Positions 17,162-52,716 of a stretch of DNA of 64,000 nt are shown here, piece by piece. The DNA is taken from positions 62,001 through 126,000 of IMG/VR virus record IMGVR_UViG_3300036770_006893; one strand, 5' to 3'. The notes below the pieces were generated by a model. It ran no database searches, was not told where the DNA came from, and saw only the letters and a program-made list of their open reading frames with translations. Position numbers and translations under genes: made by a program. Each line of letters starts with the position of its first letter. Position 1 is the first letter of the stretch.

Positions 17162-20100
17162 ATGGCATTTAATCTTACGGCAGAAATTAATTTACGCGGA
17201 CCCAGCAACATTAGGAACGTTGTTTCTAATATTAGAAGACAGTTAAATTCTATATCTGTTGACGTATCTCCTTCGGTTAGGAACTCAGATATAAGGTCTA
17301 TAGCAACAACTATTAGATCTAGACTAGCTGGTATTAGCATACCAGTGAATATTGCTGCAAGTAGTTCTTCTATAAGGGCTGTGTCTAGAAATATAAGGAC
17401 TGGAATAGGTAACGTAAACATTCCGGTGTCTGTCAATGTTAGCCAAAGAAGCTTATCGGCTGCCAGAAGGGATATCAATGCCCGACTTAATAACATCAGA
17501 GCAAATGTCAATGTCGTTGTTAATCCCGTTTCAGTTAGAAGTGCTGCTGCTCTTAATGCCAATCTTACCAATCTTAATCAAACATTGACTAATGTCACCG
17601 CGTCAGCGACTTCAGCAGCTACGGCAATCAGAGATTTATCTGCTGCTATGAGAGCAGCTGGCGGAGGAGCAAATGCTTTAACCCAAATTAATACTGCTTT
17701 AAATGTTACTACCAATAATGCATCATCAGCAAATGCAAGCATTAGAAATATGTCCGGAGAAATAGAAAATTTCGGAAGACAAGCGGGATTAGCAATTAGA
17801 AGATTTGCCGCGTTCACTACTGTTACATCTGTTTTTTATGGCTTGGCTAGATCTGTACAGTCTGGACTATCGGCATTTATAGAATTTGATAGGCAGCTAG
17901 TTAGAATATCTCAGGTTACTGGGGATAGCTTAAGTAGTATAAAAAATCTTTCTAATAGTATAACCTCTTTATCTCAACTATACGGAGTATCTTCTGAAAA
18001 ACTAGCTGAAGTAGCTGTTGTGTTGGCTCAAGCTGGGTTATCTGCTAAAGAAACTCAACAGTCTCTTGCGTCTTTAGCAAAGACTACACTGGCTCCATCG
18101 TTTGATAATATTAACGATACTGTGGAAGGTAGTATCGCACTAATGAGACAGTTTGGAATACAAAGTAATCAGCTAGAGCAAGCATTGGGTTCTGTTAACG
18201 CGGTAGCAGCAAAATTTGCTGTGGAAGCTGGTGATATTATTGCAGCTATTCAGAGAACTGGTGGTGTTTTTGCAGCTGCTAGCAAAGGCGTAAGCGAAGG
18301 AACCGATGCTCTTAATGAATTTATTTCTGTGTTTACCAGCGTACGAGCCACTACTCGTGAAAGCGCAGAAACAATCGCCACAGGTTTAAGAACTATTTTT
18401 ACAAGAATACAAAGAGGCGGGACTATAGAAGCCCTAAAAGATTTTGGTATTAGCCTAACGGACGTCGAGGGGAAGTTTGTTGGCGCCTACAAGGCTGTAG
18501 AGCTATTGAGTACTGGGCTATCCAAATTAGACCCAAGAGATTTAAGATTTAGTCAAATCGTAGAAGAGCTCGGCGGCTTTCGACAAATTGGTAAGGTTAT
18601 TCCACTTATTCAACAGTTTGCTACGGCACAAGACGCTCTTCGAGTAGCACAAACTGGTGCTGGTTCTTTATCGGAGGATGCGGCAAAGGGTCAATTAGCA
18701 CTCGCTGTGCAGATAGCAAGAGTAAGAGAAGAATTTTTAGCTCTTATTAGAAGCGTTGGCGATACGTCTAGCTTTAGAACTTTGGTTAAATTAGGGCTAG
18801 ACCTGGCCAGCTCTCTAGTCCAGGTAGCAGATGCTGCAAAAGAATTGATCCCGCTTATAGGAGCATTTGCGGCTTTTCGTGGGGCTCAATCATTAACTAG
18901 GTTTGCTGCTGGCTTTGCTGGCGGAATCAGAGGTACTCCAGCAAGAGGTTTTGCTAGTGGTGGTTATGTTCCTGGGTCTGGCAATAGAGATACTGTTCCT
19001 GCTATGCTTACCCCAGGAGAATTCGTCATTCGCAAAAAGGCTGTTGAAAAAATTGGCGTCAGCAGTTTATCTAGATTAAATCGTAATAATGGCGGCCCAG
19101 TGCCCGCTCAATATTTTGAAGATGGCGGACAAGTACAACGGTTTGGCATAGGAGGAGTTGCCAAGAAAGGTGTAAACTGGAAAAATCTGTCTAAAGGCAG
19201 GGGTAAAAAAGGGCCTCGCGGACCACGAGCCAGATTTGATTTACCGCAACCAGGAGATGCAGACTTTGCTAAATGGCAACGTGAAGTATACGCAGAGTAT
19301 GATGCCGATCCTTCCTTGCCAAGAGTAAGAGTAAATGGTATACCAATGCCACCTGAAATCGCCTATGTCAATGAATTGATAGGAGAGGAGATTTTTAGGC
19401 AAAATTTTAGAAGCCGTAAAAGCAAAAAATCTGGCAAGCTTAAAAAAACACCGCTAGGATTAATAATAAGTGCCGCAAAAATGCCCAGAGGTCCACGAGC
19501 ACCAGCTGGTGAGATGGAAAAAATTATGGCTGGATATCAGCAATCTCCTGAGTTTCAGAAAGAAGCCGTCGGGGCAGGATCTTCCTTATTTTCAACCCTA
19601 AAAGGACCATTAGCATCTTTTAAGAAAGGAGGTACTTTTGGTGGTGTGATAGCTCCAGGCTCAGAAAATGCCACAAAGATAAAGGGCGCTTTAGCGAAAC
19701 TACTGAGTCAGTCATCTGGACAAGATGCTACTAAAGCTAAAACAGCACTAGATAAATTCGATTCATTTATAGCTGGTTCAACACCAGAAAAACCTGGACA
19801 CGTCTCCCATTTTACCTGGGCTATGAATCAGATATTCAAGAAAGGAATAGCAACGTTTGGTAGAGGAGGAAGAGCCTCAAGAAGAATGGGGGTTTTTGAT
19901 TTTGATATGACAACTGGAATAACGAAACAAAAAGAAACACCAAGCCTGTCTGGTTTTAGAGATCCAAAATTAGCAGTGCCAGATATACTAGGAGCAACTC
20001 CAACTGGCCTGGTTGGCCTTATGCGTAGATATGGTGCTTCACAAATTCTTACAGCACGATCCGGTGGACCAAGAGGGGAGATGAGAAGAGCTCTCGGCAC

Positions 20101-23100
20101 CTTTTTTAGACGAAGCGGAGTGATGTTACCGCAATCTAACATAATAACCCTCGGCGACCAAGTAGGATCTCTTAGTACAGCAGAGAAAAAAGCTAGGGCG
20201 CTCTATGCTATAGTTAAAAAATATGGAAAAGTTGATTTTTTTGATGACGACACAGCTAATATAGATGCTGCAAAAATGGTTAGGGGAGTAAGCGCCAGAA
20301 AAGTATCAGTAATGAAAAATTTGGGTGGCTTTGTTCAGAAGTTCATGGCTGGCAAAGCCGTAAAAAGAATGCCCGATTTGCCGCCTGATATTAAGGCGCT
20401 AATAACTAGAGAAGCGCGTCTAGGCATAGGCAAAGAAGACCCAGCACTACAATCCGCCTTATTAAATTTGGTAGCTAAGAGAAATAGATCTGTAGGAACA
20501 ACAGAATTAGCTAGTAGACTTGCGGGCTTAATCAAATCAAATCAATTAACTCCACGACTGGCTAATCAAATGCTGTCTACAGGAGGATTAGCAATACCTA
20601 CAGGACCAGGAGGTAAAACAACCATACAAGCATTATCTTTGGAGGCTCTAGGACCAAAAGACACAACCAAATACACAAGAAATATAGGAGGAAGAGAAAC
20701 AGATATTCTTAGAGCTTCTCCAACACCTGATTTATCAGCACGGCTGACTAGAGATTTAGTGCAAGGCACCAGAATAGGCATTGCTAGATTCATACGAACC
20801 GGATTAACAGAATATGCTATGCAGAGTCCAGAAAATAGACGGAGCCTAATTGATAGGGGAATTAAATTTGATAGCAAAGGCAGGGCAATACCCCCTAGGT
20901 CTGCTGTTGATGCTGCTATGTCGCATGGAGATGCTGGTAATTTTTTGGGCCCATTATTCGAAAAGGGAATCATTGGATTGGGAGCACAAGCTGGACCAAG
21001 CCTTCCTGGAAAAGCAGCACCGATAGACACATCAAGAGTCGGAGATATAGTAGCAAGCATTATGAGAGGAGGGGCGCCGATATCCGCTGAACTCCCAACA
21101 GAACTTAGGGCAGCCAAAGCTAAAACACGAGCATCAGCAGGTATTCCTAATATTAATAAAAGAGGATTAGTCAATCAAATATTGAGATTTTTTAAATTAC
21201 CAGGACTAAAGTTTGCGCAAGGAGGACTCGTTCCTGGTGTGTCTTCTTCACGAGCTAGAGAAGCTATATTAGGAAAACAGCTTAGTGGAGTTGAAATGAT
21301 CAGAGCCGCTAGGCGCGCTGGTTATGATATAGAAGAATTAGACAACGGATTGATTAGGTTATCTCGTAATAATAAGACTATGCACACACTGAGCCGACAG
21401 GAGGCGTCTAAGCTTCTGGGTAGTATGACTACTGGTTATAATCTCGGTGGAATGATACAAAAATTTGCTAGGGGGGGGTCTCCAAAAGATACTGTACCAG
21501 CACTGCTAACCCCTGGTGAGTTTGTAATTAATAAGAAGGCTGCTGCCAGACTAGGATCTAGTAAATTACATCGATTAAATAAAGCTGATAAAATTAGTGG
21601 CTTTAACACCGGAGGAGAAGTTGGTCGTGTGCCAACATTTTCTTCTGGTGGTGATGTTCAGAGATTCTTTTTTGGAGGAAGAGCAAGTGCTAGACCAGGA
21701 ACCGAGGCAAATACATCAAATCTTATGATAGCAGGAAATGTGACGACCCAACTTAGAGAGGTCGCTACTGCTTTACAAGAATTAGGCGCGGCTTCGTCTG
21801 CTTCCGCTGATATTTTAAGAAGAGGAGGTAGAATAAGCGTAGAGTCAGCAAATGCTGCTTATGAAGCTGATATACTAAGAATGAGAGTTGCCGGAGCGCC
21901 AATGGATGCTGTAATTCAGGCAGAAACACGTTTGGCAAATATGAGAAGACAAGCTCAGACTCAAGTAGCTGCACAAAGACAATTAGCCGGCGTTGGCGGA
22001 GCGCAACTAGAGAGAGTAGACACAACGGCCCAACAAAATATACAAAGAATGATACAAAGAGCCCAAAACTCTGGGGTTGATCTCAACGAAGCTCAAAGAG
22101 CTAGAATCGAAGATTTAGGATATCGTAGAGCGGCTCAAGCAGGAGGATTATCAGCAGCTCAAACTGCAGGTTTAAGTGGTAATGATATTAGGCAGTTTAT
22201 TAATAGCGCTATGGGAGATCCTAGAACATTCGAACAAATGAACAGACAGTTTGAGGCTAGAAGACGAGCTGAGTTAAACAATCAATATATTGCTGAAAAT
22301 AGATTTGGTGGTGATCGGAGACGTATACTGCAACAAGCGAGTAGAGATGCTGCTGAAGAAGCCAGAATACGAAGACAAACACTAAATCAAACACGAGGAG
22401 CAGCAGGCCCAGGAGGTACTCGTGGACAGCGAATGCAACAAGGTATGTTTGCGGCTAGTTTTGCACTACCCATGCTAGCACAAATGCTTGCTGGAGATCC
22501 TTCCAGAGCAACTAGTGCTGGTGGAGCCGCAATGTCTGCTGGTATTCAGGGTGGTGCTAATGCTTTAGCTTTGGGTACAATGTTATCAAGCCTCGTCCCC
22601 CCAGGACTGCCTCAAGTTTTTGTCGGCGTTGCAACAGCTGCCGGGGCTGTGGCTCAGGGATTTATAGATGCGCGTAATGCGACTATAGAATTTGAAAAAA
22701 ATATGTCAGCTAAAAAAGTGGAATTTGCGATAGCCGACACGGTAAGGCTTTTTGATAAACTGTCTAAAGATATTAAAAATATAGATGTTCAAAACGCTAT
22801 AGGTGATAAGCTAGTAGAAGCCGCCAAAGCCGCAGAAAGATCAATAGAAATTCAATCCAATACAGCCAGAGCATTTTGGATAAATATGATAGATGCTTTT
22901 GCTTCAAACGGTAGAGAAGCAGCACAAAGGGCCCAAATTTTAGAAAAATATGGAACCACAGCTTATTTATCAACAACTACTATAGGCCAATCTTTTATGG
23001 GAGGTTCTGGAACAGCGCAACAAAGAGCTGAACGCCGCAGGTCTAACTTTGCTATGGAAATGGCTCCAGAGCAAGCTAGAGAAATTTCTAGACAATTTTC

Positions 23101-26100
23101 TGAAATAGCAGATAGTTCAAACAAGCTTTTAGAAGAAAAAATTCGTAGTGGATTAAATATTGAGCAGTATATAAATACAGATGAATTTAAGGGTCTTAGC
23201 CAAGCAATAGCACTATCAAATGCCGCTATTGCTGAACAAATTCTCAATATTAGAGCCAGTACTGTTTTGACCCAGGCTCAAAAAACAGCACAAGAAAAAC
23301 TTATTATATCAACATATGCTGAACAAGAAGCGCGTAAAAGAGCAGCTGCAATAACGAGAGAGCTTGAAATAAAACAGGCCCAAAAAGTTGTGAATCAATT
23401 GGCTCGGTCTTTGGATCGTATGTTTGGTAATATGGAACAGGCTATAAATAAGACAAATTTTGCACTAGAAAAAATGAGTCGAGATTTGGATCTGGTTTCA
23501 TCCTCTCTAACCGGACAGGCTAAATTAGGTGAAAGATCAATACAGGCGATTAATGTATTGCAAAACCCTAGAGCCTATGGCTCCGGAGAATTGAATATGG
23601 CTCGCGGTCAAGCTGCTGGATTTTTTGGAGATAGTGGAAATATCATTCGTGGACTATTGACTCTTGGAGATGATATTGAAGCTAATATAATGGGCACTAT
23701 TAATAGGACATTAAGAGATACTAGAGATGATTCTCCTGGTAAAATAGCTATAGCTATACAAAAATCCGTTAAGGAAAAATTAGCAGGGCTAGCTTTACCA
23801 AAAGATCTATCGGATAAATTAGCTCGTGAAGTATCCAAGGCTCTAGAAGAAATACGTAAAGATGGTGAAGACCAAGCGGATTTTACACAGCTGGAAGAAA
23901 AACTACAAGATTTAAACAAAATTATTGATAGTACAACGAAAGCTCAAGACATAGCTATTAAAGCGTTAGAAACATGGCAAAATGCTCTAAATTCATATTC
24001 TTCTTCTATGAATTCTTTGGTCGATCTACAAATAGACTATCAGTCCAGACTAAGAACCAGTAATGATATTCTTTTGGATGGTCAGGCATCATTAGCTAGA
24101 TCTCTCGGTAAAGATATTGGACTGGAGTCTATAGCTAATCGACGCAATTTAAGAATTGCTCAACAAACTGGAGGAGCTACGGCCCCACAGGATATTTTTC
24201 GCAACATAAATAGACTAGAATTATTGAGGGCGCAACAAGAAAACGCTTCGAATGTAGCTGCTCAAAGAGGCCCATCTGGAGCTAAAGATTTTGTAGAAAT
24301 GCAAAATAACCTTAGGTCTACTAATGTTGCACTAAGAGAAAATTTTGATGCGCTAAAAAATCTTGCTGAAAATTCCGATTTAGCATCAGCCGCTCTTAAT
24401 AAGATACAAGAAGCACAACAAAGACAACAGGGAAAAGTTTCTTTTATCGAAAAGCTTGTGACCTCAACACCAGAAGAATTAAGTGGACTCAATCGAGCTT
24501 TCGTAAGACTGCAAAACAATATTAATGGTCAGGTTAATACTATCAATAATAGTGTTGGTGCCCAACGAGCCTATATTGAAGCCATCAGAAGTGGATCCAA
24601 TGCTTTTGAAGCTATGAAGGCTGCGCAAGATGCTTTTGCGAACGAAAGAAGAGAGACTCTGTCGGCTCTAAATGATATACTACCATTTTTAGGAGGAGGA
24701 AATAAAGCAAATCAAATAAGAGCCAATACTTTAGAATCAATGCTAGCTGAGTCTGGTGTTGGTGTCTCTCCTATGTTTCAAGATATATTAAACTCTCTTA
24801 GAGATCCAGAACTAGATCCAGAAACACAAAAAGCCATTGCTCTTTATGAACAGGCCAACATTCTTCAGGTTAAGGCCAACGATTTTCTTGCTCAAATTAA
24901 TCTAAAACTAGGTGAACAAACAGCAGAAGCAGCAGCCAAAGCTATAGCAACGGCTCTTTCTTCTGTGGTGCTAACATTCAAAAATGCTGAACAAGCAGAC
25001 ATAAATAGAGGACTTATTCCACAAAATAGAGCTAAAGGAGGAATAATTTATGCCTCCAAAGGAGTTTTTGCACCAAAAGGAACAGATACTGTTCCAGCGA
25101 TGTTAACTCCTGGAGAATTTGTCGTTAATAAAAATGCTACAGCAAAAAATTTACCTCTATTAAAAAGCATTAATAGCCAGACTCTTAGTTCTGGAGGTAA
25201 AGTAAAGTATTATGCTCGTGGAGGCTTAGTAAGTAGTTACTTAAGTACCAACGCTCAGTCTAGGGACGATTTTCAGCAAACAAAAGACAAATTTCTAGAT
25301 CTTTCTGAAAATGAACAACTATTTCAGGATGTGTCAAAGACATCACTATTTAGATTACCAAGCACATATATCAGAAAACCACAAGCTGGATTACAAACAC
25401 CCAGTAAATCATCTCCCGCAAGAGAAAGATACGATGATCGGCCAAATAAATATCGCTTAAAAGAATTATATTCTAATTCTGGAGAAATACTACCAGGATA
25501 CGTAACTAGTAAAATAGATTTAGGCCCCTATTATTATAGTGTTCCGTCTATGGCTACGGTCGCTAACAGAGAACTAGGCAAGTATTTAGAGCCTGTTAAT
25601 TTGATTCCTGCTGGTATTAAAACCACAATTTTAGGACTAGACTCCACAGATTTAGACATATCGTCTAAAAAATATAGCAAAAAAGATTTTGCTGAATATA
25701 AGAAAAAATTAGAGACGTTAAATATAGAAAGATTTAATTGGATTAACAACCCAGCAAGCTTTGCGCTCAGAGCATTAGAGGGTGTTACACAAGAATATCC
25801 TTCAAATATAGATCCAACCGCTTTAAACAATAGATTTTTTGATCCTAATTCTAAGCAAAAGCTAAGCTCTATCTATCCATCAGATGCAGGTCTCAGAACT
25901 TCTTCTGTTCCTTTTAAATATGCTAAAATTTTATCTGACAACCGATCTGATTATTTCGGTATTACTACTGGTTCAATAGGAACAGAGCCTCCAAATGGAG
26001 ATTTTTCATCTGGCCCCACTTTATCTAAAACAATAGATACAATGTGGGCTAAGGTATGGAATATAGATAAAAATAAAGCTTTGTCTCCACAGAGAGCCAA

Positions 26101-29100
26101 AGATATACTTAACTATAATCGCAAACAATTTAAGCTTATAAATAAAACTGTTCAAGCAGCTAAAGATAATTTTAAAGATATAGAGCTAGAAGATTCTGGC
26201 GAATTAAAAGACTATTTTGAGCTACAGCAGCAGTTGGGTAATCTATATAATAATTTTTCTATATACGAGGACTTTAATAAGCTGGATTTATTTGCAAATC
26301 CGCTATTATCTAATGCTAAATCACTAACAGTATTGTCTAATACTTCTGTTGCTAGATCAGATCTAAAAAAATATATCGAAAACCAACAAGCCCAGCTCGC
26401 TCAAGGAGTCGCCCCAGACAATAACGATAATCCAATCCTTATTGGTCTTAGAGATCCGCTTCCGCCAGATCTACAAGACGCAACCAACAAGTGGGTTAAA
26501 AAAACTGAATTTGATATTTTTTCTAGAGATGGGACCGGCCCAGTCAAAACTTTCCCATTCTTAATTAATGCAGATGCCAGAGATTTAGGCGAGGGTTTTA
26601 TGAAGAGAGCCGCTGTTGCTCTACAGGCCCAAAAAGATGCTATAGAAACAAGCATGGTAATAGATAATAATAAAATGACGCTTACGCTTGGCGCCGGTAA
26701 GAACATAGAGCTCCCCTATTCTGCAACATACACAAAATATAGTGGTCCTTTGTGGGATTTAAACAATAATACTTTTAGTGATGATAAAAATAAACAGCTC
26801 AAAGATTTATTCCTTCCAGATAAGGGTGCTGAAAATTCTATTTTTTCTAGTTTAGATACTAATGGAAGTAGATTATTTAAAAGGGGTGGTGTTTTTGATC
26901 TAAATAATATTCAACAAAGTATACCAGCTGACAATATCAATAAATTAATAGATTTGGTAAAAAATAATTCTGAACAAAATTTAATAGATAAAGAAATACA
27001 AAATATAAAAAATCAATCATCATTAACATTTAGACATATTGGAGATAATCAGGGATCACTAATTAAACTACAAAGAGCTATTGGTAAAGAAGTTTTTGTA
27101 GGCTATTCTCAATTAGCAAACACACCTGTTGATTTTGGAGCGTTTGTTGCTCAAGGTGTTATAGACTATGCTAAAAATTTAAAACAAGAAGCTGGAATAG
27201 CAGCTGGTCGTGCTCAGGGAGCAGATGATCAAGACCGAGTAGTATCAGATGTTCCGATGGCATTGCAACAACTAACAAAAGGAGCATTGAATGTATTTGG
27301 TAGAAGGCCTATTCCAGGTATAGGTCGTGGATGGCTAGCAAATAACATAAGACCGCTTATTGGATTAATGTCTAGACAGGGTCGCGGCAGAGCACCCGGT
27401 CTTACTAACGATCAAGCTAGAGGAGCATCTGCGTATATTAGAGATGTGATGAATAATGTTGGTGGATATGTTAATCAAATATCCGGAAGAGTATCCAATC
27501 CTGTGCTATACAATAGCTTAAAGGATACTTTAATTCTTATACAAGGTGCCTATAAATCATTTGATGCGCTGGCCAGATCAGATAGTGCAGATTTAGCACA
27601 AATGCTGAAATCTAATCTGGATCCAGAATCTATATTCCGTAGTTTTGGTTCTGGTGCTATGCTTGATAGAATAGCCATGAGCGAACTATCTGGCGACTAT
27701 AAGAATATTCTTGGTCAGCAGCTACGTGGGTCAAAGATAGCAACGGTTGGTGATAATGGCGATATTAAGCTACAAGAAGCGGCCAATCTTGAATTTAGAA
27801 ACTATAAAGACTTAATCAAATTGGCCATCAACCCGTATAATGAGTTTTCTTCTGTAAAAACTAGAAGAGGTATTTTTGGTAAGCTTACGAACGATATTTC
27901 TGGTGCTGTTGATAATAGGGGTATGCCTTATTTTGATCCTAACACACTCAATTTCTTATTAACTTCGCTCAATCAGCTAGATAAATGGTATGGTGGTGTT
28001 GGTCCTTGGCTAGGTCAAGACTATCTCTTTGATAAGACCTTAGACCCGGATCCTGCTACACGATCTCAAAAATTCCTGGCTAGTTTGCAGAAGGCCCAAG
28101 GAATATATGAATTATCTAATGTTGCCTATCAAAATCTTGGTGGGGCTGGTAAGTTTGGTCCAGTTTTACCAAATAAAGAATGGTTTCAAAATCGTATAGA
28201 TGCTGGCAACTTTGCTACCGGCGGTATGGTTTATGCGTCCGGTGGAACACTAGTTAACTATCAGCCACGAGGCACAGATACTGTTCCTGCTATGTTAACT
28301 CCGGGAGAGTTCGTGGTCAACAGATCTGCTACAAGAAAAAACCTGCCACTATTACAGCAAATTAATAGCGGTTACTTAGCAGAAGGCGGTATGGCCGAAA
28401 GTGCTGGTGTTAGTAGATTAAGATGGACTCCAGAAGGACGAACACGAGCTATAGAACAAAAGGACACAATCACCCCAAAACTAAACAATATAAATAAAAA
28501 CGTTCTCAATAATTTTACTAGTATTACATCTATTCAAAAAGATATTAAAAATATTAAAGATAGCATAAATAACAATACGCAATCTTTACAACAAACTATA
28601 AGCCTACTAAATATTAAATTTACTGAATTACAAAACCTATCTCAAGCCTTGGCTCCGTTTGTTTATAGTCAGTTACTGGTGGCTTTAAGAAATTTCTGGA
28701 GTAGTTTAGGAACAGCCATTATAACACAGGGACTCGGTAATGGTGCGCCATGGCCTCCTGCTCCGTTTAGCGATGGAGGAATTGTATATGCTAGCAAAGG
28801 ACAGCTCATTAATTTTCAACCAAAGGGAACCGATACTGTCCCGGCAATGCTTACTCCGGGCGAGTTTGTTGTTAATGCTAAAGCAACTAAAAATAATTTG
28901 GGATTATTACAAAGTATAAATAATGGAGTTGGTGGGTATAATAGGGGTGGAGTGGTTTATTTGGAAGATGGCGGCTTAACTCCTGGAGCAAAACAATCAT
29001 TAATAGACTTACAAAATCAAGGATATAATTTACAAGATATTGTATCTGGTAAAACAAGAATTCCTGGTATTATAGTAGAGACATCTAAAAAACAATATGA

Positions 29101-32100
29101 TCCTATGATGCCAACAAAACCGGCCCCAAACATAGAAACATATAGAGAAAATCCAAAATTATGGAACGGATTTAAAGACTCTAGTGGTTTTTGGTGGAAT
29201 AAAAGAGGAGAATCTGTCATAAGCGCATATGGGACTCCCCCAGTATTGCCAAATTTTCAAGAAAGAATGCAAGCATTTGAGTCTATTGTAAGTGCTTTTG
29301 CCGGGGCGGGCGGAGTAGGAGGTGGTCGCGGAAAACTAGCAGATGTTCGTGGCCTGCCTGCTGGAATGCCAATGCAGAGAAACGCTCCCGGACCATTAGG
29401 AACTAAAGTCGCTATTCCATATCTTATTGGTAGACCAAATCCCAATAATGCACCAAGAGCTAATTCAATGGGTCTCACATTAGACGCGATTAGAGATCCG
29501 CTAACAGGAAACTACTACGTATCAGATACTCCCGCAAGAAATATTACTATTTCTGGACGCCAAGGATTACCAGCGCCAAAAACTAGACAAAGAACAAAAT
29601 CACCTCTAGATTTAGAAAATGGTAAAATACCAGATTCTATTACTAATCCCAAATCCAAAGAATTTATGCATCTTGCGATAAAAGAAATGATTGGATATAC
29701 TGAATTCATGAATCTGGTTAAGCTAAAAGTACAAAGATCAGATAGGACATACTCTAGCTTATTAAAATTTTTAGCCTTAGATATATTTCCAAAAGGAAAT
29801 GCTTATGGAGTTGATTCTCTAGATAAAGCTATTTCATTTTTTAATACTCCAGAAGGTATAGAATTATATAATACAAAAATATCTCCAAAAATAGGCGTTG
29901 TTCCAGAGATAGGTGGATATAACGCATCTATAATTAATCAAAATTCTAAAACAGGTGGCGGAGGCATTACAGGAAGACTATTAAAAGAATTATTTCAACA
30001 AAATATATTTCATATTAGTAAAAGATCAGCAAATGTTCCAGACGATCTTAATTCCAGAATGGCGTCGTTGATTCCCCCAACAGCTGGATTGCTATATGAT
30101 GACAATATAGCAAAACTATTATCTTCCGCTGGCGTTACGCCAAAAGTAGATTCGAATAGAGTTAGTTATGTATTTGATGTCGCTGAAGCAGGGAAAGACT
30201 GGGGGTTACTTACTCCAGATCAAAGGGCCCATCTACAACAATTTGCTCCAAAAGCAACTGGCAGCGAATCATCTAATATGAAAAGAGGTCAGCTTAGGAC
30301 ATCATCCAGAGAAAGATTAGGTGATGGGCCGCCTAGCTTATCGAAATTTGGAACAGCCACTCCTAAAAAATCTTTTCACGGATCAGGATCAGAAATTATT
30401 CAAGTAGACCCAATGAAGCTGAACCAGGGTATGCTTGGTGAGGGTTTTTATGTGGGTTTTGATGCTAACGAAGCACCTATTAATTTTTTAAAGATGAGAT
30501 TAGACAGCTGGTTACTAGCTAACAAGCTAAAACCAGGAAATATTACACCAGAGCAATTAGCGCAATTTAAGGGTGGTATATATCCAGTTGATATATTAGG
30601 AGGCATTGATGACTTTTTGGCTGCTGATCAAATTCTAAAAGACAATCCGGCAGCGTTAGCAAAAATAGAAAATATATACAAAGACTTAGGACTAAGAAAA
30701 GTTTCTCTTGGACCAATAGAATATAAAAATGATCCAACGACAGGAAGAGCAAAAGCAGTAAGAACAGAAGGACCGCTTGATCTACCATCTGCCACAGTTA
30801 TGCAGGTTTACGACAATATTCAAAACCAGCTAGCAGCTAAATATGAAACTGAATTTGCTGGTAAATCCAATATTCCTGATCCAAGATTTGAGGCGCTCAC
30901 AAGATCAGCTACAGATATGAGAAATATATTTGTAAAATATGGCATACCCGGATTTACCGATTTAAATAATGCTCGTAGTCAAGGCTCGATGGCAGCTATA
31001 TTTGATTTGAATAGAATTAAATTAGGTAAGGCATATATTCCTGATAAAATACTCAAAGAAATAATGATGCCCATTGATCAAAATACTTATAAAGATATTG
31101 ATGGCGACTTAGAAATATTAGAATCTGTAAATAAAAAGAAAGGAGGTATAATTTATGCTAGCAAAGGCCAGTTTATAAACTTCCAACCTCGTGGCACCGA
31201 TACTGTTCCCGCAATGTTAACGCCTGGAGAATTCGTAGTTAACCGAACGGCCACACAGAAAAACCTACCTCTGTTAAAAGCTATTAATAGCGGTGTTGAC
31301 GGATATAGCAATGGAGGAGTTGTTTATTTAGCTGCTGGTGGCAGGCCACAGCGTACAACTCGAGATAAAAATAAGCTTGATATTAGAGAAATAGATAATA
31401 GATTCAGGTCGCAAATGACCAGTCGCAATGCTCAACAAATGGCCGAGGCCGCCGCAAACAGAGAAGGCAAGCTATGGGTATTCATGGTTAAGACTAGAGA
31501 TAATAATGGCGCAGAAACAACGGGCTTTTTAACAAAGGATCCTAATAACCCCAATCAGCCGGCACCAAAAAATATTCCGCCACAAACAGAATCTTTACTT
31601 GCGAATAGACTAGATGAAATATTTACTCTAAGAGCAAGAAATGAAAAAGAGGCCATGGATGCCTACAAAGAGATGAATGTAGCCGGACTGTTACCTGAAG
31701 TCAAACCAGCCTCAGCTCAACAAGCACTGAACAAGGCTAGAAAAAAATGGATGCAGCAACCACTATATGCCAAGATTTTTGATGAACTAGCTTATCAAAT
31801 TAATTTAGATCGAAATCAATTTAGCATATTTAATCCTGATTTCTTCAATCGAAATGTTAATGTTGATGAAAATATAAAGCCAATTATGGCTATTGTTGAT
31901 AATATGGATCCCAACAACCCCGCATCTGTTGCTTTGGGCGTTCCAGCAATATTAACTAAATTAAGACCAATAGTTCAAAGAATTAATTATTTGCGACACA
32001 TTATTAGAAACAATGAGCAGGCCCTAACAGCAGTTAAGAGTGCGATAGCCTCAGGCCTAAATATAAACGATCCTGCTAATATGAGAAAAGCTTTCGAAGG

Positions 32101-32965
32101 CAATCCTGCTACAAAAATTAATGAGGAACAACTTAATGGCGCCAAGCCCGAATTGGCTGGTGGTGAACAAGTATTAAATAAGCTTGGAACTAATCCTGTA
32201 CTAGCTAATCTTGGACGAGATCCTAGGTTTAAAGAGATAGTATCCACGTTTGGTTATGGTCCAGGAGTGGCTGTATCCACATTTGAGCGCCGTGTAGAGC
32301 AGATGGCTGCTCCACCAAAACTACTAGCCTCTGGTGGTAGAGTTACCTATGCTAGTAACGGACAGCTTATTAATTTCCAGCCACGGGGTACCGATACTGT
32401 ACCAGCTATGTTAACACCAGGAGAATTTGTGGTTAATCGCGAAGCGGCCAATAAGCACTTGTCTCTATTGCAAGCTATTAATAACAATAATTTTGCAAAT
32501 GATTCTGTTTTAACTTTAAGTCGAGGTGGTTTTATTTCCCCAGCATATTTACGTAATGGTGGATCAGCACCCTCTTTGGCCGGTTTATCTGATATGGTAT
32601 CAAAACTTACTCAGAGCATACAATCAGCAGTAGAAACAGCTATAACCAAAGCTTTTGAAAATTCTGAGCTATTGCGATCTAATTCTAGCGATGGTGTATC
32701 TGATAATGGTGCTGTTGTTGATCAAATAGCGGCGTTTACTAGAAATTTGGGAGATTTGGCGAATCGACTAGAGACGATATCTGTACCACCAGAAATCACT
32801 ATACAAGGACGACAAGACATCAATGTTAACGCTAATGGATTACAGGTACTTTCCAGTCTAGACCCATCTATGAAACAGCTCGCTATGAATATGATCAAAA
32901 CCGCATTTGATAATTTGGCCACAAAAAATCCCGGAACTTTAGATTTTAATGTAGACTATCCATAG
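17162..32965 (+). CDS. Giant tape measure protein (5267 aa), TP901 family, with embedded HAD and ADP-ribosyltransferase-like domains
   Basis: PhageMin_Tail/TP901 core near 17870-18700 (LAQAGLSAKET...LMRQFG...AVAAKFAVEAGDIIAAIQRTG...AETIATGLRTIFTRI); long Ala/Arg/Gln helical tracts; hydrophobic stretch near 22440-22670; follows tube and chaperones. Confidence 0.92.
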   Translation: MAFNLTAEINLRGPSNIRNVVSNIRRQLNSISVDVSPSVRNSDIRSIATTIRSRLAGISIPVNIAASSSSIRAVSRNIRTGIGNVNIPVSVNVSQRSLSAARRDINARLNNIRANVNVVVNPVSVRSAAALNANLTNLNQTLTNVTASATSAATAIRDLSAAMRAAGGGANALTQINTALNVTTNNASSANASIRNMSGEIENFGRQAGLAIRRFAAFTTVTSVFYGLARSVQSGLSAFIEFDRQLVRISQVTGDSLSSIKNLSNSITSLSQLYGVSSEKLAEVAVVLAQAGLSAKETQQSLASLAKTTLAPSFDNINDTVEGSIALMRQFGIQSNQLEQALGSVNAVAAKFAVEAGDIIAAIQRTGGVFAAASKGVSEGTDALNEFISVFTSVRATTRESAETIATGLRTIFTRIQRGGTIEALKDFGISLTDVEGKFVGAYKAVELLSTGLSKLDPRDLRFSQIVEELGGFRQIGKVIPLIQQFATAQDALRVAQTGAGSLSEDAAKGQLALAVQIARVREEFLALIRSVGDTSSFRTLVKLGLDLASSLVQVADAAKELIPLIGAFAAFRGAQSLTRFAAGFAGGIRGTPARGFASGGYVPGSGNRDTVPAMLTPGEFVIRKKAVEKIGVSSLSRLNRNNGGPVPAQYFEDGGQVQRFGIGGVAKKGVNWKNLSKGRGKKGPRGPRARFDLPQPGDADFAKWQREVYAEYDADPSLPRVRVNGIPMPPEIAYVNELIGEEIFRQNFRSRKSKKSGKLKKTPLGLIISAAKMPRGPRAPAGEMEKIMAGYQQSPEFQKEAVGAGSSLFSTLKGPLASFKKGGTFGGVIAPGSENATKIKGALAKLLSQSSGQDATKAKTALDKFDSFIAGSTPEKPGHVSHFTWAMNQIFKKGIATFGRGGRASRRMGVFDFDMTTGITKQKETPSLSGFRDPKLAVPDILGATPTGLVGLMRRYGASQILTARSGGPRGEMRRALGTFFRRSGVMLPQSNIITLGDQVGSLSTAEKKARALYAIVKKYGKVDFFDDDTANIDAAKMVRGVSARKVSVMKNLGGFVQKFMAGKAVKRMPDLPPDIKALITREARLGIGKEDPALQSALLNLVAKRNRSVGTTELASRLAGLIKSNQLTPRLANQMLSTGGLAIPTGPGGKTTIQALSLEALGPKDTTKYTRNIGGRETDILRASPTPDLSARLTRDLVQGTRIGIARFIRTGLTEYAMQSPENRRSLIDRGIKFDSKGRAIPPRSAVDAAMSHGDAGNFLGPLFEKGIIGLGAQAGPSLPGKAAPIDTSRVGDIVASIMRGGAPISAELPTELRAAKAKTRASAGIPNINKRGLVNQILRFFKLPGLKFAQGGLVPGVSSSRAREAILGKQLSGVEMIRAARRAGYDIEELDNGLIRLSRNNKTMHTLSRQEASKLLGSMTTGYNLGGMIQKFARGGSPKDTVPALLTPGEFVINKKAAARLGSSKLHRLNKADKISGFNTGGEVGRVPTFSSGGDVQRFFFGGRASARPGTEANTSNLMIAGNVTTQLREVATALQELGAASSASADILRRGGRISVESANAAYEADILRMRVAGAPMDAVIQAETRLANMRRQAQTQVAAQRQLAGVGGAQLERVDTTAQQNIQRMIQRAQNSGVDLNEAQRARIEDLGYRRAAQAGGLSAAQTAGLSGNDIRQFINSAMGDPRTFEQMNRQFEARRRAELNNQYIAENRFGGDRRRILQQASRDAAEEARIRRQTLNQTRGAAGPGGTRGQRMQQGMFAASFALPMLAQMLAGDPSRATSAGGAAMSAGIQGGANALALGTMLSSLVPPGLPQVFVGVATAAGAVAQGFIDARNATIEFEKNMSAKKVEFAIADTVRLFDKLSKDIKNIDVQNAIGDKLVEAAKAAERSIEIQSNTARAFWINMIDAFASNGREAAQRAQILEKYGTTAYLSTTTIGQSFMGGSGTAQQRAERRRSNFAMEMAPEQAREISRQFSEIADSSNKLLEEKIRSGLNIEQYINTDEFKGLSQAIALSNAAIAEQILNIRASTVLTQAQKTAQEKLIISTYAEQEARKRAAAITRELEIKQAQKVVNQLARSLDRMFGNMEQAINKTNFALEKMSRDLDLVSSSLTGQAKLGERSIQAINVLQNPRAYGSGELNMARGQAAGFFGDSGNIIRGLLTLGDDIEANIMGTINRTLRDTRDDSPGKIAIAIQKSVKEKLAGLALPKDLSDKLAREVSKALEEIRKDGEDQADFTQLEEKLQDLNKIIDSTTKAQDIAIKALETWQNALNSYSSSMNSLVDLQIDYQSRLRTSNDILLDGQASLARSLGKDIGLESIANRRNLRIAQQTGGATAPQDIFRNINRLELLRAQQENASNVAAQRGPSGAKDFVEMQNNLRSTNVALRENFDALKNLAENSDLASAALNKIQEAQQRQQGKVSFIEKLVTSTPEELSGLNRAFVRLQNNINGQVNTINNSVGAQRAYIEAIRSGSNAFEAMKAAQDAFANERRETLSALNDILPFLGGGNKANQIRANTLESMLAESGVGVSPMFQDILNSLRDPELDPETQKAIALYEQANILQVKANDFLAQINLKLGEQTAEAAAKAIATALSSVVLTFKNAEQADINRGLIPQNRAKGGIIYASKGVFAPKGTDTVPAMLTPGEFVVNKNATAKNLPLLKSINSQTLSSGGKVKYYARGGLVSSYLSTNAQSRDDFQQTKDKFLDLSENEQLFQDVSKTSLFRLPSTYIRKPQAGLQTPSKSSPARERYDDRPNKYRLKELYSNSGEILPGYVTSKIDLGPYYYSVPSMATVANRELGKYLEPVNLIPAGIKTTILGLDSTDLDISSKKYSKKDFAEYKKKLETLNIERFNWINNPASFALRALEGVTQEYPSNIDPTALNNRFFDPNSKQKLSSIYPSDAGLRTSSVPFKYAKILSDNRSDYFGITTGSIGTEPPNGDFSSGPTLSKTIDTMWAKVWNIDKNKALSPQRAKDILNYNRKQFKLINKTVQAAKDNFKDIELEDSGELKDYFELQQQLGNLYNNFSIYEDFNKLDLFANPLLSNAKSLTVLSNTSVARSDLKKYIENQQAQLAQGVAPDNNDNPILIGLRDPLPPDLQDATNKWVKKTEFDIFSRDGTGPVKTFPFLINADARDLGEGFMKRAAVALQAQKDAIETSMVIDNNKMTLTLGAGKNIELPYSATYTKYSGPLWDLNNNTFSDDKNKQLKDLFLPDKGAENSIFSSLDTNGSRLFKRGGVFDLNNIQQSIPADNINKLIDLVKNNSEQNLIDKEIQNIKNQSSLTFRHIGDNQGSLIKLQRAIGKEVFVGYSQLANTPVDFGAFVAQGVIDYAKNLKQEAGIAAGRAQGADDQDRVVSDVPMALQQLTKGALNVFGRRPIPGIGRGWLANNIRPLIGLMSRQGRGRAPGLTNDQARGASAYIRDVMNNVGGYVNQISGRVSNPVLYNSLKDTLILIQGAYKSFDALARSDSADLAQMLKSNLDPESIFRSFGSGAMLDRIAMSELSGDYKNILGQQLRGSKIATVGDNGDIKLQEAANLEFRNYKDLIKLAINPYNEFSSVKTRRGIFGKLTNDISGAVDNRGMPYFDPNTLNFLLTSLNQLDKWYGGVGPWLGQDYLFDKTLDPDPATRSQKFLASLQKAQGIYELSNVAYQNLGGAGKFGPVLPNKEWFQNRIDAGNFATGGMVYASGGTLVNYQPRGTDTVPAMLTPGEFVVNRSATRKNLPLLQQINSGYLAEGGMAESAGVSRLRWTPEGRTRAIEQKDTITPKLNNINKNVLNNFTSITSIQKDIKNIKDSINNNTQSLQQTISLLNIKFTELQNLSQALAPFVYSQLLVALRNFWSSLGTAIITQGLGNGAPWPPAPFSDGGIVYASKGQLINFQPKGTDTVPAMLTPGEFVVNAKATKNNLGLLQSINNGVGGYNRGGVVYLEDGGLTPGAKQSLIDLQNQGYNLQDIVSGKTRIPGIIVETSKKQYDPMMPTKPAPNIETYRENPKLWNGFKDSSGFWWNKRGESVISAYGTPPVLPNFQERMQAFESIVSAFAGAGGVGGGRGKLADVRGLPAGMPMQRNAPGPLGTKVAIPYLIGRPNPNNAPRANSMGLTLDAIRDPLTGNYYVSDTPARNITISGRQGLPAPKTRQRTKSPLDLENGKIPDSITNPKSKEFMHLAIKEMIGYTEFMNLVKLKVQRSDRTYSSLLKFLALDIFPKGNAYGVDSLDKAISFFNTPEGIELYNTKISPKIGVVPEIGGYNASIINQNSKTGGGGITGRLLKELFQQNIFHISKRSANVPDDLNSRMASLIPPTAGLLYDDNIAKLLSSAGVTPKVDSNRVSYVFDVAEAGKDWGLLTPDQRAHLQQFAPKATGSESSNMKRGQLRTSSRERLGDGPPSLSKFGTATPKKSFHGSGSEIIQVDPMKLNQGMLGEGFYVGFDANEAPINFLKMRLDSWLLANKLKPGNITPEQLAQFKGGIYPVDILGGIDDFLAADQILKDNPAALAKIENIYKDLGLRKVSLGPIEYKNDPTTGRAKAVRTEGPLDLPSATVMQVYDNIQNQLAAKYETEFAGKSNIPDPRFEALTRSATDMRNIFVKYGIPGFTDLNNARSQGSMAAIFDLNRIKLGKAYIPDKILKEIMMPIDQNTYKDIDGDLEILESVNKKKGGIIYASKGQFINFQPRGTDTVPAMLTPGEFVVNRTATQKNLPLLKAINSGVDGYSNGGVVYLAAGGRPQRTTRDKNKLDIREIDNRFRSQMTSRNAQQMAEAAANREGKLWVFMVKTRDNNGAETTGFLTKDPNNPNQPAPKNIPPQTESLLANRLDEIFTLRARNEKEAMDAYKEMNVAGLLPEVKPASAQQALNKARKKWMQQPLYAKIFDELAYQINLDRNQFSIFNPDFFNRNVNVDENIKPIMAIVDNMDPNNPASVALGVPAILTKLRPIVQRINYLRHIIRNNEQALTAVKSAIASGLNINDPANMRKAFEGNPATKINEEQLNGAKPELAGGEQVLNKLGTNPVLANLGRDPRFKEIVSTFGYGPGVAVSTFERRVEQMAAPPKLLASGGRVTYASNGQLINFQPRGTDTVPAMLTPGEFVVNREAANKHLSLLQAINNNNFANDSVLTLSRGGFISPAYLRNGGSAPSLAGLSDMVSKLTQSIQSAVETAITKAFENSELLRSNSSDGVSDNGAVVDQIAAFTRNLGDLANRLETISVPPEITIQGRQDINVNANGLQVLSSLDPSMKQLAMNMIKTAFDNLATKNPGTLDFNVDYP
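18989..32431 (+). repeat. Seven dispersed copies of the peptide motif DTVPA(M/L)LTPGEFV inside the TMP
   Basis: Asp codons begin at 18989, 21488, 25085, 28277, 28832, 31199 and 32393 (aa 610, 1443, 2642, 3706, 3891, 4680, 5078). Each copy is flanked by (F/Y)xxGG half-motifs. Confidence 0.95.
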
Positions 32966-52400: not shown

Positions 52401-52716
52401 ACTAGTATTTGTCAAAGATCGATCTGGATATACTGCTCCTAGAGCAGCTAAGTTATTATGTAGATATGATAAAGATACGGGCTTTTATGAACCTGTATCT
52501 AAACAGTCTTATTTTGTATTTGGTACAATAACTGGTGGAAATAATGCGGTTGTTGATTTATCTTATATACAGGGTAAGCACAGAGGTAGTAATTTTCCAA
52601 CGCTAAATATAGTTTTTGATAATACTAGATTCAAAATGAATATATCTGCAAATAGCAGAGGAATGTTTTATTATGAAAATGGCACATGGGTTTTGGTAGC
52701 AAAAAATGATAACTAA
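46483..52716 (+). CDS. Large tail-tip/hub-like structural protein (2077 aa)
   Basis: The N-terminus (LGASVLSYSVNIGWGGQPSVLNVEL...FAGIVQSWEK...YTVTIEGP) resembles hub/Tal-type openings; CPCC...CPCC metal-binding pair near 51340-51430. Confidence 0.55.
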   Translation: MSNTCPGAQNNSDQVIQTLFLGASVLSYSVNIGWGGQPSVLNVELINDEQPAACEADNTSLFPNSSFGPDHYYTCVGDACYIDERGRTYSRNNRPPPLKKMRPGKLYFYFENGEIKSQYWKDGDPGFFGDYTYINKTGAYTKDLASSYDIIGSPVVFVLDSFVFAGIVQSWEKNPITRTYTVTIEGPDSLLENSWIILRDYGGSIFSSTGSSLGAPLPYIGPLAQNNGKIADGNIHNVFNVYGFLESFGVDYYGGSNATEDGIPYSSIIDALSVLTSIEGNQAAAVNILNNLNKRAFSPFGRILSKPIVDLDLSVATMGNFGVVPSQVDDLNINRSFYTLDLSELPILDNSFRMSGDVVSIMDFIRSLTAVSGKDFYTQLLPVSINGILHNIIKVKVIDRNIRPADNQISLTINSLKTAGYKVNVNSLGKEKSDSSSSKIMYVGAKQERLYQAKNYRLGFRQTAYVYDPALNKFVDFDFLNDLGKVRYPSPYSTRNTAISSSVNGTFATNVFNQIENIRLRIERVVPESIDNIWTDTEVGGSDQVKHWNYSPSIRANLVFNRLDKQNQRYIPIYMDTISPFFGYVMDDQANVNTGNASNNFRKIRPVWFDNLTGQLAVVIKTSELPPITLGSSSLFRTASLQTILPNGSVLITETEIRAAMSGFDSYFTYCDAKAVANKPQLYLMLLSAYYHANPAFANNRGGGVGWARGTNGSIIPFLPPENIFAEANVANNLGLPGNPQSAPTSIGWSALIDDNFIKDLMTICQFIANIGNSFYGKKYMVRIGGINSYRDTTAYLNGSTPYIINASTYLPNSTEQIAVFQGGGKIYFSSEPCDSAWEEPGNIIDDSFVVGGAAWYNLINEQGKIPPLLGYNASDNYDSEAMRLCLISKIMPGGVSRTTNANIAQSALSSLDPSASMPRTLGYNYSNFTYLGSFANQSTALKTDTSYGNMVRFFLTAGTGSCSKDKFIYPSINVSSLNKNDFVIVNTNSSRINAFGDTISPGNRNTILPPILQPNLQLAPVTNPQGMAKKLFVKAQADEMGFMDPLNLRDPRIILTSPGVELNPVSLIFSVDPTRTVLCNAAVEDLLVYLKAVPGPIQDKSFINHLLRQIRGYDAFSNVYLNPQGNALVGALFGGSWPAMAYNNNVTTQHAQIAPKAAHPYFAAIPMRLNQSCYGPWTNYPYLIRSEIFSDGITNQLASYNSELDYLNSQLNSPQLSNLDRKEIARSIKRIGQLINRANTARNNVSSGAAIENLVGGVKVQIEPDFVPWNYGGMAFLDKVVIGFINSNTDFRQILETAQIQINSAPIFGIGGEFMYTDPDSITGSIRFNNEAYQVNVIPLQYEDVKANPSSTPINIPIVGNPIYLPPIGGTTYTKINVTYNVITLLSQNRTGIAPIITNMSTRFDTSGFNTTYTFRSYARKLGLYSKQFSDRLKNSVQQSLQLNKTLFSLDSGIRNSKNILVQNRINERNNDRSSYSIESLRNSKLFGTSPTEVFIGSAQGYLPSVNIIENRISMAFANRTPNGMPNGVTTSPLSINGQDPGDIAVNPKDVGGLSKKYRHRSWVGMFQHWETKTELQEGYEEKAAMSLDGLLSPVSFYPTPNNSTYAMLPYPKINGRSMCPCCRGTHSVTQQVGIGNQLSNLTAPCPCCSRGMPSIVFAQNVPADIGSGVSGVNAMNLQPVVVPFPVWRNAHAQPPSSGERQRHSIRVVGRNWLAPFDARNGMSLDIDKNKEVLIDPLNNKIVENGAGVNKDFHVADIGMFHANGGFYLNNHRFFALRGPLMLHGWGYDISGYPVPNEADEPDPQTMISNLPKRFRLTVSGTNDYTQDGAVFATQAPYGLGDIIGKGWKFSDGSWTRTPSKYFHVNWGERPDLWPVGPIDLRWDANRRVWTAGGEGGCPEQLPPFIIADTDDPALLSEFTKLPKSECPYKLIYITLEEDMIKEPDYDETYPVRGFIDDIQYSKEPLPNKARRLVFVKDRSGYTAPRAAKLLCRYDKDTGFYEPVSKQSYFVFGTITGGNNAVVDLSYIQGKHRGSNFPTLNIVFDNTRFKMNISANSRGMFYYENGTWVLVAKNDN

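Follow-up and report, generated by a model that had tools for sequence, protein, structure and literature searches.

The stretch of DNA analyzed here (64,000 nucleotides, hereafter the window) belongs to IMGVR_UViG_3300036770_006893, a contig of 224,357 bp from an uncultured jumbo phage, and carries a giant open reading frame (ORF; 17162..32965, plus strand) whose translation of 5,267 amino acids (aa) is, judging by its sequence, a tail tape measure protein (TMP). The translation shows the PF10145 core at aa 265-470 (E 1.5e-22, Pfam scan), is matched by TIGR01760 in NCBIfam (E 3.7e-22) and by nine or more PHROG TMP families, and combines this core with a tail-gene neighbourhood and a great length with helical repeats. 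Embedded in this protein lies a segment (aa ~4402-4636; 30365..31069, plus strand; delimited by conservation and an AlphaFold model) whose homology to ADP-ribosyltransferases (ARTs) is shown by the comparison of profiles and models, and which we describe as a divergent ART-PolyVal or PARP-like (H-Y type) fold predicted to form a discrete insert in the TMP. A preliminary description of the sequence had proposed an ART-PolyVal-like domain inside the TMP at 30368-31030, an uninterrupted frame on the plus strand corresponding to aa 4403-4623; the carrier and the position were correctly recognized, but the domain ends slightly further 3' than stated. No antisense ORF longer than 73 aa competes with the domain, and no local GC anomaly was found. 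The domain sits between two copies of a module repeated along the TMP, the fifth (28751..28963, plus strand) forming the N-terminal bound of its segment and the sixth (31118..31330, plus strand) following it directly.

The motifs of the fold can be followed through the segment in order, and the strands of an AlphaFold2 model of the domain (254 aa, 8-sequence alignment; predicted local distance difference test (pLDDT) 79.6, predicted template modelling score (pTM) 0.74) fall on them. In the numbering used here residue 1 of the domain is TMP aa 4395, conservation refers to the alignment of the domain's own family (A2), and all features of the domain lie on the plus strand. Strand 1 (residues 8-13) carries S-F-H-G-S (30371..30385), in which the His and Gly of His4406-Gly4407 (nt 30377-30382) are invariant in A2 and align with the YHGT of ART-PolyVal; this pair is predicted to be the His-Gly that anchors nicotinamide. 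Strand 2 (residues 35-38) falls on G-M-L-G-E-G-F-Y-V-G (30428..30457), which contains Tyr4430 (nt 30449-30451) and the invariant residues G29, G32, Y36, and G38, and aligns with the G-x-G-v-Y-x-T of the reference domains. The second aromatic residue of the H-Y-Y/F tetrad would be Phe4442 (30485..30487), a position occupied by Y or F in all members of A2 and aligned with the Y-A of ART-PolyVal. Strand 3 (residues 79-84) corresponds to G-G-I-Y-P-V-D-I (30572..30595), where Tyr4474-Pro4475 (Y80 and P81, both invariant) align with the v-i-P-l strand. An H-Y-Y-E tetrad with Tyr4474 as its second Tyr was also considered and rejected, as the aromatic residue at +11, Phe4442, aligns better.

Strands 3 and 4 are separated by an insert of ~110 aa (30611..30937) for which DSSP assigns helices at residues 102-115, 152-171, and 180-198 and a beta-hairpin with strands at 120-129 and 136-144. 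Reference domains of the ART-PolyVal type differ in length at this same site, and the equivalent helical region of AcrIF11 is the most variable part of its fold and is predicted to recognize the target (bioRxiv 10.1101/2024.08.26.609590); by analogy, the insert is a candidate target-recognition module. Strand 4 (residues 203-206) follows in G-I-P-G-F-T-D-L (30941..30964; G200, I201, and G203 invariant), the counterpart of G-Y-D-G-i in hhalign comparisons at low mact; the prototype domain from a Roseovarius phage has GGYDGAIV at this site. Finally, S-M-A-A-I-F-D-L-N-R-I-K (30986..31021; M216, D221, and R224 invariant) covers strands 5 (residues 216-219, Met first) and 6 (residues 225-227), with Met4610 at nt 30989-30991 and Asp4615 at nt 31004-31006. 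All strings quoted in the preliminary description (SFHGSGSEIIQVDPMKL, GMLGEGFYVG, GGIYPVDI, YGIPGF, and SMAAIFDLNRIK) are present in the translation of 30368-31030.

The residues of the predicted NAD (nicotinamide adenine dinucleotide) pocket are thus retained in the sequence, namely His4406-Gly4407, G-x-G-F-Tyr4430, an aromatic residue at +11/+12 (Phe4442; Tyr or Phe in the family), and Tyr4474-Pro4475. Polyvalent-protein ARTs were defined by an H in strand 1, a Y in strand 2, and a D in strand 5, were placed in the Tox-ART-HYD2 clade and were related to PARPs and to the cholix and diphtheria toxins (Iyer et al., 2017; PMC5512222). The segment has the His of strand 1 (Y-H-G-[ST]) and the Tyr of strand 2 (G-x-G-x-Y) and lacks the acid of strand 5. 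In the reference domains strand 5 reads E-x-V-x-F-[DN]-P-x-x-[IV]-[RK]-S, as in E-L-V-V-F-D-P-K-N-I-R-S or E-R-V-N-F-N-P-N-D-V-R-S, and hhalign places the M-A-A-I-F-D-L-N-R-I-K-L of the window in register with this motif. Because this register is shared, Met4610, which is also the first residue of strand 5 in both structure models (that of the window domain and that of the family member P0007 described below), is assigned by alignment to the canonical position of the catalytic Glu. The suggestion in the preliminary description that the usual acid before the last strands is missing was therefore accurate, Met4610 aligning with the Glu of PF18760-type domains. The same strand of the window parallels the PARP motif x-E-Y-[VI]-[VI]-[FY] (PMC7955679).

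Other readings of this region were considered and rejected. Asp4615 is invariant and could be taken for the D in strand 5 of Iyer et al., but it lies five residues past the catalytic position and is probably not catalytic, since it matches the Asp that follows the Glu in the F-D-P or Y-D of the reference domains. PARP1, whose strand reads E-Y-I-V-Y-D, also has an Asp after the Glu at the equivalent position. A register aligning the Q-M of the family members P0006 and P0007 with the E-I of the Roseovarius prototype was set aside in favour of the stronger F-[DN]-x-x-x-[IV]-[RK] anchor. Of the 35 domains of the reference set, 14 have E and 2 have D at the strand-5 acid position, and the remaining 19 have N, V, Q, S, M, Y, H, or T there (Met in one), so that non-acidic variants are common in the ART-PolyVal lineage.

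The relationship with ART-PolyVal emerges from comparisons between profiles. Two families of the Pfam ART clan (PMC7955679) match relatives of the domain over the N-terminal H...Y part: PF18760 matches four of eight family members weakly (best E 0.011, below threshold) and DUF3990 two of eight (best E 6.9e-4). When the family profile was searched against 5.8e9 proteins, the sole match beyond one family fragment was P0012, a protein of 218 aa already annotated with PF18760 (E 0.028). A reference alignment (A4) was made of 25 trimmed ART-PolyVal-type domains from relatives of P0012, 22 of which match PF18760 (best E 6.6e-14). Trimmed domains were used because shared motifs at the N- and C-termini, and not the ART domain, prevailed in the full-length alignment (A3), and only domains spanning the full model were kept because jackhmmer over-expanded on the small local set. 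Comparison of A2 with A4 by hhalign gave a probability of 97.2% (E 4.4e-11) over strands 1-3, while the untrimmed reference set gave 96.5% (E 8.5e-10). With relaxed mact the alignment ran through the whole domain (96.9%, E 1.8e-10), and the C-terminal 59 columns alone were aligned at E 6.3e-4 with the register unchanged.

Controls with a hidden Markov model (HMM) of A4 were clean. Among 339 six-frame tiles of the window, only the two covering the segment matched (14.8 and 13.8 bits; the next tile reached 2.9), and the real domain scored 15.3 bits, while no shuffled sequence that returned a score (867 of 1,000) exceeded 6.6, which indicates a sequence resemblance to ART-PolyVal beyond chance. 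Besides, 51 of the 100 nearest clusters in the ESM Atlas carry PF18760, with a top score of 0.91 and 167-169 shared features, values that are borderline by the tool's own guide. The ART-PolyVal profile had its top PDB matches, weak and non-significant, in PARP13, PARP10, and tankyrase over the G-x-G-x-Y motif. The PARP catalytic domain PF00644 was not matched in Pfam scans of the segment and family members. Searching the segment with tblastn against 50,697 phage records returned no match, and a reference ART domain returned one uninformative match.

The small metagenomic proteins that include P0012 (P0012-P0081) have an organization of their own. They share an N-terminal G-Y-P-E-S-V-A-K-R-I-x-S-G-E-L-P-M-D and a C-terminal A-A-F-D-P-E-Y-T-G-S-N-I-L-G around a variable centre, which in many cases is an ART-PolyVal domain, whether or not it has the acid. 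Their architecture resembles that of a cassette whose constant ends are perhaps packaging or processing signals.

Comparison of structures pointed in the same direction. Foldseek searches of the domain model against viral models (BFVD) gave 11 matches at E<=1e-3 (top 1.1e-9), and the matches include a protein named 'PolyVal ADP-Ribosyltransferase' (E 8.3e-5, TM 0.49 on target), an 'ART-PolyVal-like domain-containing protein' (E 1.2e-3) and large multidomain phage proteins. The remote homology to ART-PolyVal put forward in the preliminary description is thus upheld by profile-profile alignment, by viral structure matches and by the Atlas neighbours. A more compact family member, P0007 (aa 830-1020), was also modelled (pLDDT 81.9, pTM 0.78), and its best match in the PDB, known at chain level, was 9k3a_B (probability 0.99, E 0.013, TMq 0.55), followed by the diphtheria toxin catalytic domain (E 0.25, TM 0.28) and MbcT (E 2.1).

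Chain B of 9k3a is the ejection protein gp27 of cyanophage A4 (A-4L). It was first taken for gp28, from the 'alpha+beta domain' named in the structural paper, and this assignment was rejected as gp28 lacks the ART motif. The gp27 gene of Anabaena phage A-4L (KF356198, 20116-25269, minus strand) encodes an ART-like region at aa ~1420-1610, with L-Y-H-G-T...G-S-G-T-Y-F-S at aa 1423-1464 and, further on, G-V-D-A-L...L-V-I-N-P-D-A-V. This region aligned with the ART-PolyVal alignment at a probability of 73.8% (E 2.9e-5, hhalign), nothing was found in it by the Pfam scan, and it has no sequence-profile similarity with the TMP family. The structural paper on gp27 makes no mention of an ART (PMC12002296), and gp27 appears to contain an unrecognised ART-like domain.

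Relatives of the TMP domain are very few, even in word-indexed and exhaustive HMMER searches of billions of proteins. The closest are two full-length TMPs of 5,336 and 5,166 aa, 56-66% identical over the domain, together with a fragment of 224 aa, while distant copies (27-38% identical) occur in proteins of 1,401, 2,544, 5,532, 7,872, and 1,013 aa, the 7,872-aa protein having two. The 5,532- and 7,872-aa proteins have a start like that of the window TMP and PF10145, and the other distant carriers have the same LTPGE module. Three loci with the domain were found in IMG/VR, their contigs measuring 187, 192, and 224 kb (that of 224 kb is the window's own), and one further locus in JGI metagenomes, whereas no relative was found in GTDB representative genomes. 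Altogether, 14 copies from 13 proteins or loci were recovered, all in giant TMPs or TMP-type fragments, the full-length relatives spanning 5,166-7,872 aa. The position of the copies along the protein varies (aa ~830 in P0007, ~920 and ~5350 in P0006, ~4400 in the window). A Logan contig (SRR25454913, 1-11042) carries the domain in the 1,013-aa ORF, and an ORF upstream of it, at least 2,682 aa long, has its end overlapped by this ORF over 50 nt. Such an arrangement points to a TMP encoded by two genes or to one broken up by a frameshift or by faulty assembly.

Identity among the three closest TMPs is 68% within the domain, compared with 20-27% across the 450 residues upstream and 35% just downstream, and at the sequence level the domain stands out as an island of conservation within the TMP. 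The residues invariant in the family are H12, G13, G15, G29, G32, Y36, G38, Y80, P81, G86, G87, I88, D90, F91, and A94 in the first part of the domain and D157, R193, G200, I201, G203, M216, D221, and R224 further on. A motif scan of the 14 copies found H-G-[STG]-G, G-x-Y, [YF]-P, G-I-[PA]-G, and M-x-x-x-[FY]-D-x-x-R wherever the respective part of the domain is present; the fragment P0011 is N-terminally truncated and has no N-terminal motifs, and the H-G of P0005 was seen outside the scan. These motifs persist despite an overall identity of 27-35% between subgroups, a pattern that shows purifying selection on the residues of the predicted NAD pocket.

The remainder of the TMP and its surroundings provide the context of the domain. 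A module of ~70 aa with the core TDTVPAMLTPGEFVVN occurs seven times along the protein and divides it into eight segments; in addition to the two copies that flank the domain, the motif scan located copies at 18908-19120, 21407-21619, 25004-25216, and 28196-28408 (copies 1-4) and at 32312-32524 (copy 7). The module follows the pattern G-G-x-v-Y-A-x-x-G...T-D-T-V-P-A-M-L-T-P-G-E-F-V-V-N...L-L-x-x-I-N, matches the PHROG TMP families 25241, 17300, and 35029, and occurs in one to nine copies in the relatives of the window TMP; joints, processing sites, and tube-binding sites are possible roles. By the rule of thumb of ~0.15 nm of tail per TMP residue, a protein of 5,267 residues would correspond to a tail approaching one micrometre, unless much of it is globular cargo. 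The neighbours are giant tail-type ORFs, with a tail-fibre-like ORF upstream. Directly after the TMP lies an ORF of 1,875 aa (32975-38602, plus strand) in which Pfam recognizes an FGE-sulfatase-like domain, two FN3 domains, and a purple-acid-phosphatase N-terminal domain, and further downstream are ORFs of 2,077 aa (46483-52716, plus strand) and 2,498 aa (52706-60202, plus strand) in which no Pfam family was matched. The closest isolated phages are distant and SPbeta-like, with a best identity of ~25% over the TMP core.

Another stretch of the TMP (aa ~905-1040, window 19874-20280) resembles phosphatases of the haloacid dehalogenase (HAD) type. All four HAD motifs occur in it in order (G-V-F-D-F-D-M-T-T-G, I-L-T-A-R-S-G, A-E-K-K-A-R, and V-D-F-F-D-D-D; aa ~910-1030) and are kept in the two closest TMPs. 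The neighbours of the stretch in the ESM Atlas are viral HAD_SAK_1, T5 dNMPase, DUF2608, and PNK3P, with a score of only 0.83, and neither Pfam nor PDB sequence searches matched it. As a lead, this stretch may represent another module of the TMP with an enzyme fold.

For the ART-like domain, the likeliest mechanism, to which we assign a probability of roughly 0.45, is that of an NAD-binding mono-ART of the H-Y-hydrophobic type ejected with the TMP. The TMP would lie in the tail lumen and leave the virion first at infection, and for this reason the domain would be carried with it to the envelope or cytoplasm of the host, where it would refold. It would bind NAD+ and act as a mono-ADP-ribosyltransferase without Glu, like PARP6-8, 10-12, and 14-16, the conserved ~110-aa insert might pick the target, and a host component would be modified right at the outset of infection. 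Among the domains of injected polyvalent proteins that modify proteins, those of the ART type are the most common (PMC5512222). Mono-ART activity without Glu has a precedent, since PARPs with H-Y-I, H-Y-L, and H-Y-Y triads are listed as mono-ARTs (PMC7955679). PARP10, PARP11, and PARP15 (H-Y-I or H-Y-L) also ADP-ribosylate phosphorylated RNA ends, as TRPT1 does (PMC6582358).

Several observations weigh against this mechanism. The position of the catalytic Glu is occupied by Met in all 14 copies, and the loop before strand 5 has no conserved acid among them. AcrIF11, which by analogy is the nearest experimentally tested relative, needs its acid: the D115A mutant loses all activity and keeps NAD+ binding (PMC8120803), and D146A/E147A also abolishes activity (bioRxiv 10.1101/2024.08.26.609590; PMC8120803). 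With regard to the fold, the search with the PF18760 HMM that the preliminary description had proposed gave a negative answer, as the Pfam scan of the window segment found no ART family, PF18760 included, even at E<=10; kinship is visible only by profile-profile and structure comparison. The PF18760 gathering threshold (31.2 bits) was not reached by the relatives either (E 0.011-0.066). PHROGs and NCBIfam scans of the segment found no ART family, and searches of PDB sequences with phmmer and with the family profile (hmmsearch) gave spurious matches only. The full domain model had nothing significant in the PDB by Foldseek, where catalytic fragments of cholix toxin recur at E 0.25-1, the structural matches to solved classical ARTs are non-significant, and the root-mean-square deviations of the Foldseek matches are high (6-14 Å). 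Finally, NAD+ is cytoplasmic, this part of a TMP is not known to reach the cytoplasm, and several copies of a domain of ~26 kDa would have to fit or unfold in the tail lumen.

The invariant Met bears on whether the domain is an enzyme at all. The domain could instead be a pseudoenzyme or ligand-binding module with an ART fold and an NAD-type pocket and no transfer of ADP-ribose. Its ligand would be NAD+, ADP-ribose, or a different nucleotide, or its only role would be that of a plug in the tail, for structure or spacing, or of a folding anchor after ejection. The lack of a substitute acid near Met, the AcrIF11 mutant that is inactive and still binds NAD+ (PMC8120803), the frequency of acid loss in the lineage (only 16 of the 35 reference domains have E or D), and the very different positions of the copies along their TMPs would all fit such a role. 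On the other hand, His-Gly, Tyr, and the second aromatic residue are invariant or conservatively replaced across the family, and the invariance of Met itself points to active-site constraint rather than drift. In PARP-like domains known to be inactive the His is usually missing too, as in the Y-Y-V of PARP13. Altogether, we regard the loss of transferase activity as less likely than the mechanism above, but as its main and a strong rival. A different way to accommodate the missing Glu is an active ART whose substrate is not a protein, either a small molecule or the phosphorylated end of a nucleic acid (RNA or DNA of the host, or phage DNA as it enters), since for such nucleophiles the catalytic Glu would be dispensable. 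Members of the ART superfamily modify DNA, RNA, and rifampin (PMC8120803), and the RNA-end activity of PARP10, PARP11, PARP15, and TRPT1 is of this kind (PMC6582358), whereas the ARTs of polyvalent proteins are predicted to be protein modifiers (PMC5512222). The HAD-like stretch adds a weak lead, its nearest features being nucleotide and nucleic-acid-end phosphatases, although its Atlas score and the silence of Pfam and PDB searches detract from it; we consider a non-protein substrate unlikely. The same low likelihood attaches to a broader picture in which the TMP would be a tail-borne 'polyvalent' carrier, with the HAD-like (aa ~910-1030) and H-Y-Met ART-like (aa 4402-4636) modules held between TDTVPAMLTPGEFVVN joints and threaded into the host before the DNA, and the Glu-less ART acting on a phosphorylated nucleic-acid end or other non-protein nucleophile at the entry site.

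The restriction of the recovered family to giant TMPs (5,166-7,872 aa) or TMP-type fragments, with three IMG/VR contigs of jumbo size, could also be explained if the domain acted in the producing cell, modifying the TMP, a tail assembly chaperone, or tube proteins during the morphogenesis of a very long tail. However, we know of no tail assembly pathway that uses ADP-ribosylation, related ART domains occur in ejection and polyvalent proteins that follow a logic of delivery, and the position of the domain along the TMP is not conserved, which makes this explanation very improbable. Just as little credence can be given to the view that the segment is not an ART and that its H-G-S, G-x-G-F-Y, and F-D likeness arose by convergence or chance on another alpha/beta fold. 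The missing Pfam match, the lack of a significant solved classical ART, and the spurious PDB sequence matches are what would be expected in that case, but four independent lines (profile-profile alignment, viral models, the solved gp27, and language-model features) agree, the motifs occur in the right order on predicted strands 1-5, and both the shuffle and six-frame controls were clean.

Among known systems, the ART-PolyVal domains (Iyer et al., 2017; PMC5512222) are the closest to the TMP domain. Both share the order of the motifs (YHG[ST], G-x-G-x-Y, the aromatic residue at +11, x-P, G-x-x-G, and x-V-x-F-D-x-x-I-[RK]), a variable insert at the same place and residence in a virion protein of very large size whose exit from the particle is expected upon infection. 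The TMP domain differs in falling below the Pfam threshold, in being carried by a tape measure and not by a head-packaged polyvalent protein, in its conserved ~110-aa insert, and in having an invariant Met where strand 5 should carry an acid (D according to Iyer et al., and mostly E in the reference domains). The Pfam scan of the TMP also found none of the hallmark domains of polyvalent proteins (MPTase, SNF2, methylase, MuF). Since both the Pfam threshold and the strand-5 acid fail, we file the domain by its sequence relationships as a divergent sister family of ART-PolyVal, from the same stock, and not as a member. The gp27 protein (9k3a_B), the best match among solved structures, is likewise internal to the virion, ejected at infection, and provided with an ART-PolyVal-like H...Y motif, but it belongs to a podovirus pre-ejectosome and is not a TMP.

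AcrIF11 (PF26151), a phage mono-ART that modifies N250 of Csy1/Cas8f, resembles the TMP domain in being a small viral ART of the diphtheria-toxin-like kind, in its non-canonical active site, and in its variable helical region implicated in target recognition, and some ESM Atlas clusters near the query are annotated as both AcrIF11 and ART-PolyVal. Unlike the TMP domain, it keeps an essential acid (D115, or D146/E147) and is free in the cytoplasm and expressed after entry; it was not recovered by sequence or structure searches with the TMP domain. The H-Y-hydrophobic PARPs (PARP6-8, 10-12, and 14-16) have the His-Gly, the Tyr, the second aromatic residue, and a hydrophobic residue at the Glu position in common with the domain, whereas the latter lacks PF00644, has Met instead of I, L, or Y, and is viral and bacterial-targeting, so that kinship is at the level of the clan only. 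T4 Alt, which the preliminary description had invoked as a model, and the MuF-VIP2 fusions are alike in concept, as virion-carried ARTs delivered with the DNA (PMC5512222, PMC7302621), and differ in belonging to the R-S-E clade, in being packaged in the head and not in the tail, and in having the catalytic Glu. Because Alt is of the R-S-E clade and the TMP domain of the H-Y type (PMC5512222), the analogy stands for function and not for descent; the R-S-E features (Arg in strand 1, Ser-Thr-Ser in strand 2, and a Glu-x-Glu or Gln-x-Glu loop) are absent from the domain, in which the corresponding residue is His in strand 1 and Tyr in strand 2, and which has no E-x-E and no ADPrib_exo_Tox match in Pfam.

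TMPs with lytic transglycosylase, M23 peptidase, or Rpf-like motifs provide examples of a globular enzyme-fold module embedded in a TMP, and phage records annotate SPbeta-type TMPs as transglycosylases. These known TMP-embedded enzymes attack peptidoglycan in the periplasm or wall, whereas an NAD+-dependent fold implies a cytoplasmic substrate. To our knowledge, the virion-carried ARTs described so far are all head-packaged and the enzyme folds of TMPs are cell-wall hydrolases, and our literature search found no description of an ART in a TMP. Virion ARTs such as T4 Alt, those of polyvalent proteins, and MuF-VIP2 are tools of host takeover or counter-defence in the first minute of infection. 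Virion-delivered ARTs and enzymatic TMP domains are thus already known, and what is new is the TMP as carrier of an ART fold and the Met variant of the active site. If the proposed mechanism is true, the tail lumen would also deliver effectors directed to the cytoplasm, and part of the TMP would reach the cytoplasm in a foldable state. Besides, the invariant Met offers a natural test case of whether Glu-less viral ARTs are active like the H-Y-I/L PARPs or are NAD-binding pseudoenzymes, a question that extends to roughly half of the sampled small ART-PolyVal-type proteins, and the solved gp27 supplies an experimental structure with which the TMP domain can be compared.

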